Positions 7,424-52,650 of a DNA stretch of 64,000 bases are shown one piece after another. The notes under the pieces were generated by a model. That model saw only the letters and a program-made list of their open reading frames with translations. It was not told the DNA's origin and ran no database searches. Position numbers and translations under genes: made by a program. Source of the stretch: Botryllus schlosseri (lineage: Eukaryota); NCBI GenBank assembly GCA_051294905.1, contig CM119379.1, positions 3,658,001-3,722,000 of the forward strand, read 5' to 3'. Every line of letters starts with the position of its first letter. Position 1 is the first letter of the stretch.

Positions 7424-9200
7424 TTTAAAGGTGTTCCATCATAAAATCTGTTACGAAATTTGGTATATGTTGCATTGTCACAATGTCTGACAACTTCGTA
7501 CCAAATTTCGAGTTGGGGGAATGGCAAATTTCGATATTAATGTTGACTTTCCCGTCGCTGATGATAAACTTTTCCCAGTCGTGTTCCACTCTTAAGTCAA
7601 TCTTCTCCATAGAAGCACAAGCCATTCTCCACGCTCTAAAATGGATCTGCCAGAATGGCTCATACCAACAAACATATCTGATTCTATCGGACAGTCTGAG
7701 CGTGCTATCCGCTATGACCAACCTGCAGGCACCGCAAACGCAGAATGTTATATTTGAATGTGGTCGCTTGCTGAATCAAGTGGTTCAGAAAGGCGCCATT
7801 GTTGTCCTGGTCTGGGTACCGGGGCATGCTGATATCGGTGGTAATGAATTAGCTGATAAATTGGCTTGGCAAGCTGCCAGGACCAATATCGAAAATACCC
7901 CTTCTCAGACGCTTCCAGAAAAAATTAGCCACGCTGAGGCGAAAGCCGAAGTACGTCAATACTGTAGAGCGACCTGGAACGCCGAATATCAACGAAATGA
8001 GCGTGGAGGACACTATCGAAATTTCCATAGATCATTGACTGATGGCCACTTTCCATCGATGCATCGACATAGGCTTTACGAACGAATAATATTTCGGCTT
8101 CGTTCAGGCCATTGCCGCCTGAAAGCGCATTTATATAAAATTGGATGTAGCGACACCGACCTATGCGACCATTGTACAGTACCTGATACAGTCGAGCATT
8201 TTTTGCTGCACTGCAATCGATATGATTTTCATCGGAACTTTTTAATCGACAGGGCGCGCGAGCTCAAAATCACTGCAACACTCGAAAATCTACTGATCAT
8301 CCCCGAAATGTTATCCCATGTTGCAGAATTTGTTATATCTTGTGGTACTTACTTGTAAATCGGTTATTGACCATATTTTGGTAAATCGCTCATTCTAGTC
8401 CGTGATGCACCTGGCCTTACAGGCGAAAAGCGTCACTCATCTTTTCATCAATAATAATAATAATAACATAAAATATGTTACGAAAATTGGTATGTTGCAT
8501 TGTCATAATGTCCTACAACTTCGTACCAAATTTCGAGTTGGGGGAATGGCAAATTTCGATATTAAAGTTGACTTTGTATAGGTGCGTGCTACAGTCCCGT
8601 AACGATATTGAAGTTGACTGTGTATATGTGCGTGCTATGCTACCGTAAAATAGATTAACGCAACGCAAAAGTCGGTATAGAACTGCGTTAGTTTTAAAGG
8701 TGTTCCATCATAAAATATGTTACGAAATTTGGTATGTTGCATTGTCATAATGTCCTACAACTTCGTACCAAATTTCGAGTTGGGGGAATGGCAAATTTCG
8801 ATATTAAAGTTGACTATGTATAGGTGCGTGCTACAGTCCCGTAACGATATTAAAGTTGACTGTGTATATGTGCGACGTGCGTGCTACGCTCCCGTAAAAT
8901 AGATTAACGCAAAAGTCGGTATAGAACTGCGTTAGTTTTAAAGGTGTTCCATCATAAAATATGTTACGAAATTTGGTATGTTGCATTGTCATAATGTCCC
9001 ACAACTGCGTACCAAATTTCGAGTTGGGGAAATGGCAAATTTCGATATTAAAGTTGATTATGTATAGGTGCGAGCTACGCTACCGCAAACAGATGTAACG
9101 GAAAAGTCGATGTTGGACGGCGTTGGTTTTGAAGGCGTTTCATCCTAAAATGGTTGACGAAATTTGGTATGCTACACCTTAATGATGTTGGCTAACACTG
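7424..9200. repeat. ~240-bp tandem repeat array (3-4 units) interrupted by a LINE
   Basis: CATAAAATATGTTACGAAATTTGGTATGTTGCATTGTC...ACCAAATTTCGAGTTGGGG recurs near 7440, 8467, 8709 and 8952, then decays. Confidence 0.9.
7551..8466 (+). mobile_element. 5'-truncated I-group (I/Nimb-like) non-LTR retrotransposon 3' end: RNase H plus zinc knuckle
   Basis: RNase H motifs IFSIEAQAI, ILSDSLSVL, WVPGHADIGGNELADKLA; RLRSGH; CDHCTVPDTVEHFLLHC; stop at 8358; (AAT)n tail 8450-8466. The ORF-track start at 7483 lies in the host repeat. Confidence 0.9.
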
Positions 9201-10830: not shown

Positions 10831-10902
10831 TACCAGATGGTCTAGGGGTCAGGATTCCTGGCTCTCACCCAGGCGGCCCCGGTTTGATTCCCGGTCTGGG
10901 AA
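10831..10902 (+). pseudogene. trnE: tRNA-Glu(CTC) pseudogene
   Basis: Acceptor 5' TACCAGA mismatched and T-arm GGCCCCGGTTTGATTCC altered. Confidence 0.8.
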
Positions 10903-11147
10903 CACTTTTTCAACTTGAATTCGAAAACGGCAATACAATTCAGACTTTATTACCCGTAATTTCAGATGTCTAACATAAATAGATAAACATCGAAAATCCT
11001 TGAAAGGATTGTCAGTCGATTGTAATCTTAGAATTTAGCTATATTAAGTCTAAACTAAACTATCTATGCATGCACATTGCGCACTCTTTGAACTTAAATG
11101 GAACCGCCAAATTGATTCAGTGAGATCAATAGCGATCCTCCGCCGTC

Positions 11148-11219
11148 TCGCAGATGGTCTCGGGGTCAGGATTCCTGGCTTTCACCCAGGCAGCCCGGGT
11201 TCGAATCCCGGTCTGGGAA
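11148..11219 (+). tRNA. trnE: tRNA-Glu(TTC) variant, probably impaired
   Basis: Glu cloverleaf with acceptor mismatch (TCGCAGA) and A14>C in the A box; TTTTT terminator follows. Confidence 0.7.
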
Positions 11220-11356
11220 CGCTTTTTCAAGAAGTCATTTTCCGCAGATGAATTGAATGGATATAAACGCTGCCTATTAATTCAAGACGACCGCAAATAG
11301 AATAGAAAACCATCCGCTGATTTCAATCGTCCGTAGTATACGAAGAAGGCGTAAAG

Positions 11357-14386: not shown

Positions 14387-14580
14387 AGTCCATCCTCAAG
14401 ATTACCGGACCACGACTGACCTATCGATCTCGCTTCCCATGACATGCCGCCCTATTTCTTGTCGCTTTCTTTTTCTATACTGTATTCTTTACTTTCATTC
14501 AGTGTGCATGCCTCCTCTTTACTACGCCTAGGCCAAGGTGGGTGTCCGATTCCATTGACAAATCCAAGTCGCTTCGACAT
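14387..14580 (+). mobile_element. 3' UTR fragment of an L2/Crack-like LINE
   Basis: Reverse-complement homologue of 28480-28780. Confidence 0.65.
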
Positions 14581-15086
14581 CTTATAGATAGATATAGATA
14601 GATAGTCTTTTATTCGTCACATCAATAAATAAAGAAGTATACGAAACAAATATTGCAGTATAGACTGGGAGACGACGAGGGGCCGTTAGGCCTTCAGAGT
14701 CAGTCGCCACCCGTTTGGAGTGTTTGATGCGTGTAACATATATATTAAATCACACACATATACGTAGAGTCAACATTCAGTAAATATACGACTAACGACA
14801 CGATATTAAGCTTTAATAAAAGTGTAATAAAGGATAACATTAGAACAAGCTTCCTGTCTATTCATTGTATCGCATTTTTTGTGGTGTATTGAACTGATAA
14901 AATTGCTAATAAACCAATGATGATGAACTACGCAAGGACGATAGTTTGTGAATACGAACGCCTAAACAAGCCAACCATCACTGTTAACGATCAAATTTGG
15001 ATAGCGTAGAAACTGTAAATACGGCACGAATGTACGTTCGCAGGTAAACGGAATCTGATCATTACTTGGCTTGCCAGCCTTTCGAC

Positions 15087-15168
15087 GACGAGGTGGCCGA
15101 GTGGTTAAGGCGATGGACTGCTAATCCATTGTGCTCTGCACGCGTGGGTTCGAATCCCATCCTCGTCG
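15087..15168 (+). tRNA. trnS: tRNA-Ser(GCT)
   Basis: 82 nt; acceptor GACGAGG/CCTCGTC+G, anticodon arm ATGGA-CTGCTAA-TCCAT, long variable arm, GGTTCGAATCC. Confidence 0.97.
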
Positions 15169-15171
15169 CGT

Positions 15172-15243
15172 GGGGACGTAGCTCAGTGGTAGAGCGCACG
15201 CTTCGCATGTGTGAGGTCCCGGGTTCAATCCCCGGCGTCTCCA
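15172..15243 (+). tRNA. trnA: tRNA-Ala(CGC)
   Basis: 72 nt; acceptor GGGGACG/CGTCTCC+A with G3:U70, anticodon arm CACGC-TTCGCAT-GTGTG, GGTTCAATCC. Confidence 0.97.
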
Positions 15244-15246
15244 AAC

Positions 15247-15251
15247 TTTTT
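15247..15251 (+). terminator. Pol III oligo-T terminator after tRNA-Ala (the only one for the Ser-Ala pair)
   Basis: TTTTT 4 nt after the Ala discriminator. Confidence 0.8.
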
Positions 15252-15651: not shown

Positions 15652-16110
15652 TCAATCAATCAGGTTTATTATTATTTTCATCGTTTCAAAACATTACAAG
15701 ACTGCGACACAATGAAAAGATAGGAAGGTGTCGAAACAACTTGGAGTAGCCGTTATTATCAGACACTCACCTTAGCCTAGGCGAAGTAAAGAAGAGGCGT
15801 GCGCACTGCACAGGCACACTGAATGAAAAGTAATGCAGAGAATATAAGACGCAAGCGATAAAATGAGGTGGCATGTGGCGGAGGGCGAGGTCGATGTTAG
15901 GTCGTGGTCCGGTAATCCTGAAGACTGGCTAGTATTCATTTAGAAGAAATTGCTTGTATTTCGACTTGAATGGGGACATGCTCGACGACCGTCGGATAGC
16001 CGGCGAGATGCTGTTCCACAATTGGGGTCCGGCATACTTGATAGAGCAATGCGTTTTATCTTGTATTCAGTCCTGATCATGGTAGTTGTTCTTCGTTGCC
16101 GCGCGACGGA
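15652..16110 (-). mobile_element. 3' end of L2/Crack-like LINE
   Basis: Minus strand encodes HCSIKYAGPQLWNSISPAIRRSSSMSPFKSKYKQFLLNEY*, homologous to the C-terminus of the RT ORF at 51152-52594. Confidence 0.75.
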
Positions 16111-19714: not shown

Positions 19715-20433
19715 CTTTACGCCTTCTTCGTATACTACAGACGATTGAAATCAGCGGATGGTTTTTTATTCTATTTGCGGTCGTCTTGAATTAATAGGCA
19801 GCGTTTATATCCATTCAATTCATCTGCGGAAATTGACTTGAAGTTTTTTATTCTCGATACTTACCAAATCCGAATAATATACCTATATATATTTTGATTC
19901 CATTTATTCGTGTGCGCGCGTACATCGGCACTCTTGCCATTCTCATAGTTGGATTTTAGACGAAGTCATTTTCCTGATTCGTCACAGAAAAAATCCAGGA
20001 CGCATTGTTCTGAAAGTCGTATTTTCAAGTTATTAACTTTATTATATACGTTCAGCCACTCAGCTTTTACTTGTGCACTGACCGTGTAGCTTTGGCCTGC
20101 CTGTACATTAAGGCGATAAAACTGTCTGTACTGAATGACACTTCGTAGCGTTATTTGTACTTTATCAGCCTTAGCGACTACGTTGCCCTCTTCAGTGAAG
20201 ACTTATTGGCCCTTTCTTTGGCTTTTCTTTTAGTATCTGTAATAGCTTATTACTTTTGTTTGCCATACAAAACTTTATCGACTACCAAAAATATGACACG
20301 ATAAGGTACCGTATTTTGTCGTTTATGGGGGCAAATGTCGTATACAGTTTCTCTATCGATGTTAGGCGTCTGAAATTACTGGTATAAAGTTTGTGAATGG
20401 TATCGCCGTTTTCAAATACAAGTTGAAAAAGCG

Positions 20434-20505
20434 TTCCCAGACCGGGAATCGAACCCGGGCCGCCTGGGTGAAAGCCAGGAATCCTGACCCCTAGACCATC
20501 TGGGA
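20434..20505 (-). tRNA. trnE: tRNA-Glu(TTC), intact, carried in the composite
   Basis: Reverse complement is a full cloverleaf followed by a TTTTT terminator. Confidence 0.95.
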
Positions 20506-20750
20506 GGCGGCGGAGGATCGCTATTGATCTCACCGAATCAATTTGGCGGTTCCATTTAAGTTCAAAGAGTGCGCAATGTGCATGCATAGATAGTTTAGTT
20601 TAGACTTAATATAGATAAATTCTAAGATTACAATCGACTGACAATCCTTTCAAGGATTTTCGATGTTTATCTATTTATGTTAGACATCTGAAATTACGGG
20701 TAATAAAGTCTGAATTGTATTGCCGTTTTCGAATTCAAGTTGAAAAAGTG

Positions 20751-20822
20751 TTCCCAGACCGGGAATCAAACCCGGGCCGCCTGGGTGAGAGCCAGGAATC
20801 CTGACCCCTAGACCACCTGGTA
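20751..20822 (-). pseudogene. trnE: tRNA-Glu(CTC) pseudogene
   Basis: TACCAGG acceptor mismatches and T-loop TTTGA. Confidence 0.78.
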
Positions 20823-21520: not shown

Positions 21521-22597
21521 GCGTCAAGCTTAAGTGGATAAGTTTTAATTTATGTCGTTTGTTATCGTGGACTATAGACTTAGAGATGATAAAATATTTG
21601 CGTGCTCCTCTGACGGTCTCGTGGCCCGCAACGGACCATGGCCTACAGGTTGAGAAACCCTGCCCTAAATATACCTTTCCTTTCTACAAAAATGTTTGCC
21701 AATATATCCCTTACAAGAACGCTATTGAATTTGAATCCTTTCTTACTTTTCAGTGATTTACGTTATTATGGTGACGACCAACTTCGTGCTTTTCATCATT
21801 AATGTGGTGAAATATAAAGAACACGGAGTCATAACAGGGCTCATGGGAACATGCTTGGAAGGATTTGCTATTCTTTACGCCTTCTTCGTATACTACAGAC
21901 GATTGAAATCAGCGGATGGTTTTTTATTCTATTTGCGGTCGTCTTGAATTAATAGACAGCGTTCACATCCATTCAATTCATCTGCGGAAATTTACTTGAA
22001 GTTTTTTATTCTCGATACTTACCAAATCCAAATAATATACCTCTATATATTTTGACGCCATTTATTTGTGTGCGCGCGTGCATCGGCACTCTTGCCATTC
22101 TCATAGTTGGATTTGAGACAAAGTACATTTTCCTGATTCGTCACAGAAAAAATCCAGGACGCATTGCTCTGAAAGTCGCATTTTCAAGTTATTAACTTTA
22201 TTATATACGTTCAGCCACTCAGCTTTTACTTGTGCACTGACCGTGTAGCTTAATTTGGGCCTGCCTGTACATTACGGCGATAAAACTGTTTGTACTGAAC
22301 GGCACTTTGCAGCGTTATTTGTACTTTATCAGCCTTAGCGACTACGTTGCCCTCTTCAGTGAAGACTTATTGGCCCTTTCTTTGGCTTATGTTTTAGTAT
22401 CTGTAGTAGCTTATTAATTTTGTTTGCCATACAAAACTTTATCGACTACCGAAAATACGACACGATAAGGTACCGTATTTTGTCGTTTGTGGGAGCGCGA
22501 GTCGTATACAGTTTCTCTATTGATGTTAAGCGTCTGAAATTAATGGTATAAAGTTTGTGAATGGTATTGCCGTTTTTAAATGCAAGTTGAAAAAGCG

Positions 22598-22669
22598 CTC
22601 CCAGACCGGGAATCGAACCCCGGCCGCCTGGGTGAAAGCCAGGAATCCTGACCCCTAGACCATCTGGGA
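22598..22669 (-). tRNA. trnE: tRNA-Glu(TTC) variant
   Basis: Cloverleaf with one T-stem mismatch and a G discriminator; terminator present. Confidence 0.7.
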
Positions 22670-22907
22670 GACGGCGAAGGTGCGCTATTGATCCCATCGA
22701 ATGAATATGGCGGTTCCATTTAAGTTCAAAGAGTGCGCAATGTGCATGCATAGATAGTTTAGTTCAGACTTAATGTAGCTAAATTCTAAGATTACAATCG
22801 ACTGACAATCCTTTCAAGGACTTTCGATGTTTGTCTATTTATGTAAGACATCTGAAATTACGGGTAATACAGTCTGTGAATTGTATCGCCGTTTTCGAGA
22901 AAGAGTG

Positions 22908-22979
22908 TTGCTAGACCGGGAATCGATCCCGATCCGCCTGGGTGAGAGCCAGGAATCCGGACCCCTAGACCATCTGGGA
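22908..22979 (-). pseudogene. trnE: tRNA-Glu(CTC) pseudogene
   Basis: Mirror of 1817-1888; B box GGGATCGA, acceptor disrupted. Confidence 0.8.
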
Positions 22980-43436: not shown

Positions 43437-44033
43437 CTAATGAAATACACGGAGAGAATAGAGTCGGTCCTTTTGCCGACAGAGAATCGGTTGCTCGAGT
43501 TTTATTATAGTCGATTCGAGAACCTTTAAATGGAACAGACTACGTCCACGAGCAAGAATTGAAAATCTGCTATCTTTAAACGATTTTGCACACTCTGGAT
43601 GCGTAAGAAGGTGTTGACCTATTGCAGAGTTATATGCCATGGTCTGGTCATAGTCGCGCAAGAAAGGGTTGCTTGTCTGCGATAGACTGTCTGAAATAGC
43701 ATTGACGTCAGCTTTTCTAATCCGCTTGGGCACATGTTGGTTGATTCTTTGTTGCAAACGAAGTGAAGTACGACCCACATACCGACTGTCGCAGTGGCAC
43801 GTATAATTGTATATAATACTACTCTGTTTTGTGGCAGGTAGTACATCCTTCTGTGTTGCAGGAAAGAGAGATTTTGTGGTGAAAACAATCCTAGGTTGTA
43901 CCCACATGAAACATTGACTAACAGACGACATGATGTGCTTCTCAAATCTACCAGAAACTTTACCAATCCATGGTAAATTAAAAATATACTGGACATTTAC
44001 TGGGTCCAATGAATTTTGTGGCTCTGAAGTCAA
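43437..44033 (-). mobile_element. 5'-truncated Penelope-like element, GIY-YIG endonuclease ORF
   Basis: NLPWIGKVS linker, IIYNYTCHCDSRYVGRTSLRLQQRINQH, SAIGQHL, LESTIIKLEQPILCRQ. Confidence 0.9.
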
Positions 44034-50835: not shown

Positions 50836-52650
50836 GACAGACAGACAGACAGACAGACATTTATTGCTTCGTCAAACAAAAAAAGTTGACTGGAGGTGAC
50901 GATATGGCCTATAAAGGCCTTATTACTCGTCACCTCCATGGCAGTGAAATAATCAAGTGCACTCATCCCAATAAATATAACAGTGGACAGTCTGCAACAT
51001 GAAAGAGAATAATAATCACAAATAGAAGACAATAATACACACAAATATATAACAAAGACAGTAGCCATGGCAACATACTAGGTAAAGCAATATGTAGTCA
51101 CTAAATAGATGTATAATTTATAAATCAACGGGTACTAGATAGTAGATACTCTCATTTCTGATTATAATTTGAAAAAAGGTAATCCTGGTATTGGGTTTTA
51201 AATTCCTGCTGAGGTAGCTCTTTGATACTGTCGGGCACGTCATTCCAAATATTTGGGCCCATATATTCAATGGACTGTTGGGTCAGTCTGGAGTTCATAC
51301 GGTGAACATAAAGATGACCAGATTCCGATGATCTAGTAGAATACCCATGCACAGTGGAAGATTGCTCAAACAAGCTATTAAAGTAAGGGGAGATATTACC
51401 GTTTGCGAATTTATGCATCAGGTTGGCTATTTCATAATTATACAAATCGGGTAGCTTAAGTATCCTGAGAGCTAAATAACCGGGACTAGCAGATGACCTA
51501 GAATCTATGCCACATATATTTCTTATGGCTCGATTTTGGATGACACAGATTCTGTTTAAATCCGTCTGATTGGCCTTCCCCCATACACATAATCCATAAA
51601 GCAGATGAGGGTGAAATAATGAGAAATAAATGGTTCTCAAGGTCTGTCTAGGGAGAGAATGTCTCAGTCTCGCTAGAATTCCGGCCGTAGCAGATAGCTT
51701 TTTACATAGATTGAAAATGTGGGTCTTCCATTTAAGATTGGAGTCAATGATAATTCCCAGATATCTTGTATGGGTTGAGGGTGCAATAATGACATCAGAT
51801 ACCCTTAGTGAAAAAGTTGAGGTAGCTTTACAATTGAAGACCAGTACCTGAGTCTTAATTGGATTAATGGTTAGTCGGTTGGTTTTCATCCAAGCAGTCA
51901 TCTTACAAATCTCGGAATTAGCTTTGGTTTGTAGAGAGGTCAAGTCTGCAGCAGATATAAGTACACAAGTATCATCAGCAAATAGGACCGAGGTCTCCGA
52001 GATACATGCAGCAACATCATTGATATAAAGACTGAATAATAGGGGTCCTAAAACGGAGCCCTGTGGTACACCACACAATATGTCACCCTTTTCAGAAGGT
52101 AGGTGATCCTTACTGTAAACATATTGACATCGATTGGTAAGATAGCTTGTAATCAAATCCAAGGCTACACCTCTGATTCCACAACACGAGAGTTTACTTA
52201 TAAGTATTGCATGATTGACAGTGTCGAAAGCTTTTTTTATATCAAGAAAAACAACACATGAAATCATACCAGAGTTGTGTCTCTGATAAATTTTGGAAGT
52301 AAGGGCAAGAATTGCTTGATTAGTGTCAAGATTTTGTCGGAAGCCAAACTGGTTGTCTAGTATGACAGAGTGAGCATCGAGGAAGCTGGTAAGTCGTCGA
52401 TGCAGTAGCTTTTCAAAAATTGTTGACAAGGATGGTAGGATAGATATGGGGCGGTAGTTGTTGACATTGTTTTTATCACCTGACTTGAAAATAGTGACAA
52501 CCTTGGCAACCTTCAATGCATCTGGAAATATCCCTAATGAAATAGAACTGTTGAAAAAATGGACCAGGTGTCTAGAGACCAAAGGAAAAATCAATTTTAG
52601 TAGTTTAATAGGAATTCGATCACATCCTTCTGTGCCGACTTTAGATTAGT
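50836..52650 (-). mobile_element. 5'-truncated L2/Crack-like LINE: reverse transcriptase ORF, AATAAA and (TGTC)6 tail
   Basis: ORF 51152-52594 with NYRPISIL, QFGFR, VFLDIKKAFDTV, GVPQGSVLGP, FADD, YLG motifs. RT homology extends to about 52645. GACA x6 at 50836-50859. Confidence 0.93.

Follow-up and report, generated by a model that had tools for sequence, protein, structure and literature searches.

Tandem tRNA-Ser and tRNA-Ala genes at positions 15087–15251

The window analyzed here, a stretch of 64,000 nucleotides corresponding to G000:C9:3658001–3722000 in an assembly of 495.5 Mb, contains two complete tRNA genes that share a strand and follow each other head to tail across a gap of 3 nt. 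The upstream member, tRNA-Ser(GCT) (15087–15168, plus strand), is a class II tRNA of 82 nt with a long variable arm (ARAGORN; Rfam RF00005, 66.3 bits), and direct reading places its discriminator base at G15168. The downstream member, tRNA-Ala(CGC) (15172–15243, plus strand), is 72 nt long and carries the G3:U70 identity pair (ARAGORN; Rfam RF00005, 66.8 bits). Both genes extend over the full length of the RF00005 model, for which the gathering score is 29. The spacer between them, CGT (15169–15171, plus strand), was delimited by direct reading and by alignment of the copies described below. The 172-nt stretch 15080–15251 is predicted to fold into two domains, with a separate acceptor stem closing each of them.

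Consensus-type internal A and B boxes are present in each of the two genes. The A box of the Ser gene, TGGCCGAGTGG (15094–15104, plus strand; by direct reading), fits the A-box consensus TRGCNNAGTGG and is the presumed promoter element of the whole unit, and the Ser B box, GGTTCGAATCC (15147–15157, plus strand), ends 14 bp upstream of position +1 of the Ala gene. The latter box was located by a B-box/A-box pattern match starting at G000:C9:3673147, that is, at window position 15147; the match to this pattern ends at 15189, with the Ala A box, TAGCTCAGTGG (15179–15189, plus strand). The Ala B box, GGTTCAATCCC (15222–15232, plus strand), was read directly, and the gene body around it is shared with standalone Ala(TGC) genes. 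Counting from the start of the Ser gene, the first T run of the Pol III terminator type is a T5 (TTTTT) at 15247–15251 (plus strand; direct reading), just 3′ of the Ala gene; there is no oligo-T between Ser and Ala, and a T4 is absent from the entire segment 15087–15246. The description given in the earlier note, of two intact tRNAs, a CGT spacer, and a T run only after Ala, is exact, with ARAGORN, Rfam, and direct reading in agreement. Two additional Rfam matches over the tRNAs, to YrlA (25 bits) and to a plastid 3′UTR (31 bits), are far under their gathering scores and were taken as chance, and a scan of the region for bacterial-type promoters and terminators was set aside as irrelevant to Pol III.

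The tRNA pair is flanked by diverged copies of a dispersed repeat (71–77% identity), with the copies at 14393–14583 and 14850–14915 inverted relative to that at 15663–15924; members of the same repeat family are found near other tRNA loci, namely, L005, L007, L008, L015, L026, and L029. Elsewhere in the window, ARAGORN identified nine tRNA-Glu genes with TTC or CTC anticodons (617–689, 1817–1889, 2127–2199, 10831–10903, 11148–11220, 20433–20505, 20750–20822, 22597–22669, and 22907–22979), eight of which form four TTC/CTC pairs ∼240 nt apart, two per strand, with the TTC gene at 617–689 standing alone. Retroelement open frames are located at 51152–52594 (minus strand), 7483–8358 (plus strand), and 43437–44033 (minus strand), and the matches of these frames are to reverse transcriptase (E 1.8e-32), RNase H (E 7.9e-09), and, weakly, GIY-YIG. 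On the same contig, at 15.07 and 15.03 Mb (G000:C9; L045 1489–1872 and L046 1489–1800), we detected paralogous exons matching glycoside hydrolase family 6 (31.8 and 28.1 bits; cut-off 27). Among animals, a GH6-like domain is typical of tunicate cellulose synthase, and this exon pair would fit a tunicate gene pair of the cellulose-synthase type.

Copies of the pair in the genome and in a second organism

A search of the genome with the 165-nt stretch as the query yielded 46 matches, of which ∼25 covered both tRNAs. The pairs, at ∼25 loci distributed over contigs C5, C6, C8, and C9 and with spacers of 2–4 nt, make up a family of which the earlier note had no knowledge. We aligned 24 copies together with 40-nt flanks. 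In seven copies (L001–L004 and L006–L008), both tRNAs are identical to those of the window copy, the flanks are unalignable from the first base beyond the tRNAs, and the spacers read CGT, CG, or TG (that of L002 being 2 nt long). In L005 and L009, two Ala bases are not those of the window copy, and the other copies show progressive decay, such that more than half of the copies are degenerate, with 73–96% identity. The decayed copies are mostly clustered, at 4.10–4.13 Mb and 12.63–12.70 Mb of C8 and at 7.42–7.55 Mb of C6; several hundred bases of flank are common within the clusters, indicating that the cluster members are segmental duplicates. In one decayed pair (L012 1502–1573; G000:C6:7473575–7473732), the Ala anticodon has become CAC, and ARAGORN calls a tRNA-Val.

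Across all copies, the spacer measures 2–4 nt, with its letters free to vary (CGT, CG, TG, CTT, TA, CT, CTC, GTC, AT, and others). At C6:25.64 Mb (L015), a perfect Ser(GCT) is joined through the spacer AT to Ala(TGC), with T7 directly after. The combination of identical tRNAs, unrelated flanks, and differing spacers points to selection or gene conversion acting on the tRNAs and on the length of the spacer rather than on its letters, and the aligned copies argue for purifying selection on both tRNAs of the pair. Chance is excluded by the occurrence of the pair at ∼25 loci along with the zero count in the reversed-pattern control described below.

We then took a census of the tRNA genes concerned. 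In a genome-wide search with a pattern built on the D-stem and anticodon arm of Ala(CGC), the CGC anticodon was found solely at pair loci, all other matches having AGC or TGC; a seemingly lone Ala(CGC) at C8:12696621 is preceded by a decayed 3′ remnant of Ser, and a looser pattern with the anticodon stem left free gave 14 matches, all at pair loci. Every detectable Ala(CGC) gene is a member of a pair or of a pair remnant. Perfect 3′ halves of Ser(GCT) number 13, of which 11 are in pairs and two belong to standalone genes that have a T4 or T5 of their own at +11/+12. A run of T4 or longer lies 1–7 nt past Ala in eight of nine near-perfect pairs and at 34 nt in the ninth, L008. A cluster at C6:27.6 Mb contains Ala(TGC) genes that stand alone, with flanks of their own and a body like that of the pair Ala. 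Using a generic pattern that takes in common box forms only (B box, 17–30 nt, A box), we obtained 21 matches, 17 of them Ser–Ala pairs, and none in the reversed-pattern control; ARAGORN found no tRNA at two of the pattern sites that are not Ser–Ala pairs. Within the reach of this pattern, Ser–Ala is the sole type of tight tRNA–tRNA pair in the genome. Two further observations concern tRNA genes outside the pairs. A standalone Ser(GCT) variant (L029 1502–1583; G000:C8:12635503–12635585, minus strand) has a compensatory change in the acceptor stem, A5:U68 to G5:C68, and shares the G5 base with L010, L022, and L027. On C10, at G000:C10:15355342–15358003, tRNA-Ala(AGC) forms a tandem array with a period of ∼150 bp and at least 17 pattern matches.

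We scanned JGI metagenome contigs for the Ser–Ala junction and recovered ten contigs from five datasets. Individual loci recur between the samples at 99.8–99.9% identity, so that the ten contigs represent no fewer than five loci, all of one organism. The metagenome pairs join Ser(GCT) to Ala(CGC) or to Ala(TGC) through a spacer of 3 nt, GTT or AAT, and in most cases have a T run directly after Ala. The letters of the window tRNA-Ser are identical in L031–L040, and the metagenome Ala differs from the window Ala in the acceptor stem, where a compensatory change has turned C6:G67 into T6:A67, and in one base of the variable loop. In three of these contigs (L035, L039, and L040), Ser–Ala(CGC) is located in tandem repeat units of ∼1.36 kb, and some Ser halves are truncated. 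The one flank of the metagenome organism that was compared, of 8.6 kb, had no DNA match in the present genome, a Pfam search with nine open frames from the metagenome organism gave no domain, and viral contigs scanned for the junction yielded no match. The pairs in the metagenome organism, taken together with the unmatched flank, mean that two lineages without a close relationship have the arrangement in common. The pair type recurs both within its own genome and in another organism.

The number of copies, the degeneracy of more than half of them, and the transposon-rich character of the region are the features that could be expected if the copies were a tRNA-derived retroposon, in the manner of a dimeric SINE, or dead pseudogenes. 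A precedent is Twin of Culex, a SINE with a dimeric tRNA precursor as its presumed source, which consists of degenerate tRNA-Arg-like units with a longer spacer and a retroposon tail. Twin and the family described here are alike in their tandem tRNA-related units and many copies, but the tRNAs of the present family are perfect, the similarity does not reach beyond them, and a tail is absent. Indeed, the copies resemble one another precisely from Ser +1 to the 3′ end of Ala, with neither a tRNA-unrelated body nor an A-rich or repeat tail, and most copies reside in local clusters that arose by segmental duplication, the copies that share flanks being such local duplicates. Death of the genes is hard to reconcile with seven perfect cloverleaf pairs of identical mature sequence and with the fact that the pairs provide the only Ala(CGC) genes and most Ser(GCT) genes of the genome. 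We accordingly regard a retroposon or pseudogene origin as very improbable. An even more remote explanation, to which we assign next to no weight, is an artefact of assembly or collapse that joined separate tRNA genes: no point in its support was found, and the junction is present at many loci, on four contigs, and with differing spacers, as well as in contigs that were assembled independently from five metagenome datasets. Both explanations were rejected on the evidence against each.

A probable common transcript and the decay of the upstream gene

Pol III stops only at T runs. With 11 of the 13 perfect Ser genes located in pairs, Ser must be expressed from the pairs, and with no terminator between Ser and Ala, the anatomy of the unit and the established behavior of Pol III imply that any Ser transcript initiated at a pair runs through Ala. 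We consider it likely that the locus belongs to a family of dimeric Ser(GCU)–Ala(CGC) genes present in many copies, each a dicistronic Pol III unit; the single transcript and its dependence on the Ser promoter are what we infer from the sequence.

Under the proposed mechanism, TFIIIC would bind the A and B boxes of Ser, and TFIIIB would assemble upstream of 15087. Pol III would start a few bases before 15087, proceed through Ser, the 3-nt spacer, and Ala, and stop at the T5 at 15247–15251, giving a precursor of ∼170 nt predicted to fold into two cloverleaves. RNase P (or MRP) would then cut at 15171/15172, the 5′ end of Ala, leaving Ser with a trailer of 2–3 nt, and tRNase Z or an exonuclease would take the CGU trailer off after G15168. 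The outer ends would be formed by a cut at the Ser 5′ end and by trimming after A15243, followed by CCA addition. The order favored in the earlier note, with RNase Z cutting first and RNase P then acting on a 3-nt leader, is possible.

The decay of the copies is asymmetric and bears on how the downstream gene is transcribed. In two copies, Ser has been kept and Ala lost (1 versus 11 differences in Ser and Ala, respectively, in L018, and 3 versus 18 in L021), which fits the expectation if Ser works alone. In three others, Ser has been lost and Ala kept (11 versus 0 in L014, 27 versus 1 in L024, and 9 versus 1 in L013), and these copies may indicate that Ala can be expressed without a working Ser gene. 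Consensus-type A and B boxes are still recognizable in the Ser remnants of L024 and L013, as fits the retention of these remnants as promoter and leader. In L014, the B box of Ser is damaged (GGTTTGGATCC), and this copy seems a better fit to initiation at Ala only or to recent gene conversion.

These copies lend some weight to an alternative under which Ser and Ala are abutting independent units, with Ala transcribed from its own boxes, TFIIIB placed on the 3′ part of Ser, and the pairing being a historical accident amplified by duplication. The intactness of Ala behind a decayed Ser in L014, L024, and L013 would be accounted for, as would the identity of the Ala body, complete with its internal promoter, to that of standalone Ala(TGC) genes that have flanks of their own. 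Against independence, TFIIIB for Ala would have to sit at ∼15120–15155, on the variable arm and B box of Ser, where TFIIIC binds for Ser, and the transcripts of Ser, which has no terminator of its own, would enter Ala anyway. Furthermore, the spacer has been kept at 2–4 nt in ∼25 copies and in a second organism, no Ala(CGC) gene away from Ser was found genome-wide, the consensus-type boxes persist in the Ser remnants of L024 and L013, and, in yeast, transcription that starts from the downstream gene is penalized in vivo (PMC2566860). On this evidence, two independent units are unlikely, although the asymmetric decay, including the damaged B box of L014, leaves them some probability. The dicistronic reading put forward in the earlier note is strongly favored by the comparative evidence, namely, the multiple copies, the purifying selection on both tRNAs, the maintained length of a spacer with variable letters, the terminator after Ala alone in contrast to the separate terminators of standalone Ser genes, the position of all Ala(CGC) genes downstream of Ser, and the second organism. 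The three copies with decayed Ser, of which the note was unaware, leave some room for Ala-only initiation.

Relationship to known dicistronic tRNA genes

Several dicistronic systems offer points of comparison. In Schizosaccharomyces pombe, tRNA-Ser and tRNA-Met(i) are made from one dimeric precursor, and mutations in the A box or B box of Ser drastically cut transcription of the dimer in vivo (PMC2566860). Purified RNase MRP converts this Ser–Met dimer to pre-tRNA-Ser plus trailer and tRNA-Met (PMC4234475), products which indicate that the first cut in S. pombe falls at the 5′ end of the downstream tRNA. The S. pombe genes and those described here are alike in having a class II Ser gene upstream, a head-to-tail arrangement, a spacer of a few nucleotides, and a lone terminator after the second gene. 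They differ in that the partner here is Ala(CGC) or Ala(UGC) rather than initiator Met, with spacers of 2–4 nt, and in that the host is an animal, probably an ascidian, with ∼25 copies, many of them decayed.

Spacers as short as 3 nt separate the tandem tRNA genes of hemiascomycete yeasts, in which a terminator follows the second gene; examples are Arg–Asp of Saccharomyces cerevisiae and 17 tandems in Debaryomyces hansenii, and the same pair types occur in neighboring genomes (PMC2566860). The short spacer, the recurrent pair type, and the terminator after the second gene are all shared with the Ser–Ala pairs, which are distinguished by the identity of the pair, by their occurrence in another kingdom, and by an isoacceptor, Ala(CGC), that is encoded only as the downstream member. 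Heterologous dicistronic Pol III genes are also known, including tRNA–snoRNA genes in plants, tRNA–5S rRNA and tRNA–RUF70 genes in Yarrowia, where the spacers are 4–7 nt, and tRNA–miRNA genes in MHV68 (PMC2566860). As is proposed here, the leading tRNA gene supplies the promoter in these cases; however, the downstream gene of the heterologous dicistrons is not a tRNA gene and often is without a promoter of its own, whereas the downstream Ala of the present pairs has complete A and B boxes.

The unit described here has every anatomical feature of fungal tandem tRNA genes. It combines these with three uncommon traits: an animal host, one isoacceptor encoded exclusively in the downstream position, and decay of the upstream gene in some of the copies. 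Full-text searches of the literature returned dimeric tRNA genes in yeasts only and none for tunicates or other animals, within a coverage that most subscription papers fall outside, so that a prior description is possible. As far as the searched literature shows, what the sequence comparisons most likely reveal is a conserved dicistronic unit of the yeast tandem-tRNA kind that is new for an animal. A broader proposal, toward which we lean with considerably more reserve, is that the pairs constitute the first tRNA–tRNA Pol III operon to be described in an animal lineage, the tunicates, that this operon predates the split of at least two lineages and is the sole genomic source of Ala(CGC), and that, in some copies, Ser has decayed to a mere promoter and leader for Ala.

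The usual teaching is that each eukaryotic tRNA gene forms a Pol III unit by itself, and the tRNA–tRNA exceptions accepted in the searched literature are fungal. If the dicistronic reading is correct, dicistronic Pol III transcription would extend to animals, and the supply of one alanine isoacceptor would be tied to a serine tRNA gene. The copies with decayed Ser would then represent a natural intermediate on the way from a dimeric tRNA gene to an external promoter provided by a tRNA. The spacers of 2–4 nt would serve as natural substrates for studying how a single junction is shared between RNase P and tRNase Z in animals, and, in annotation and expression work, Pol III occupancy and precursor reads would have to be taken per pair rather than per gene.
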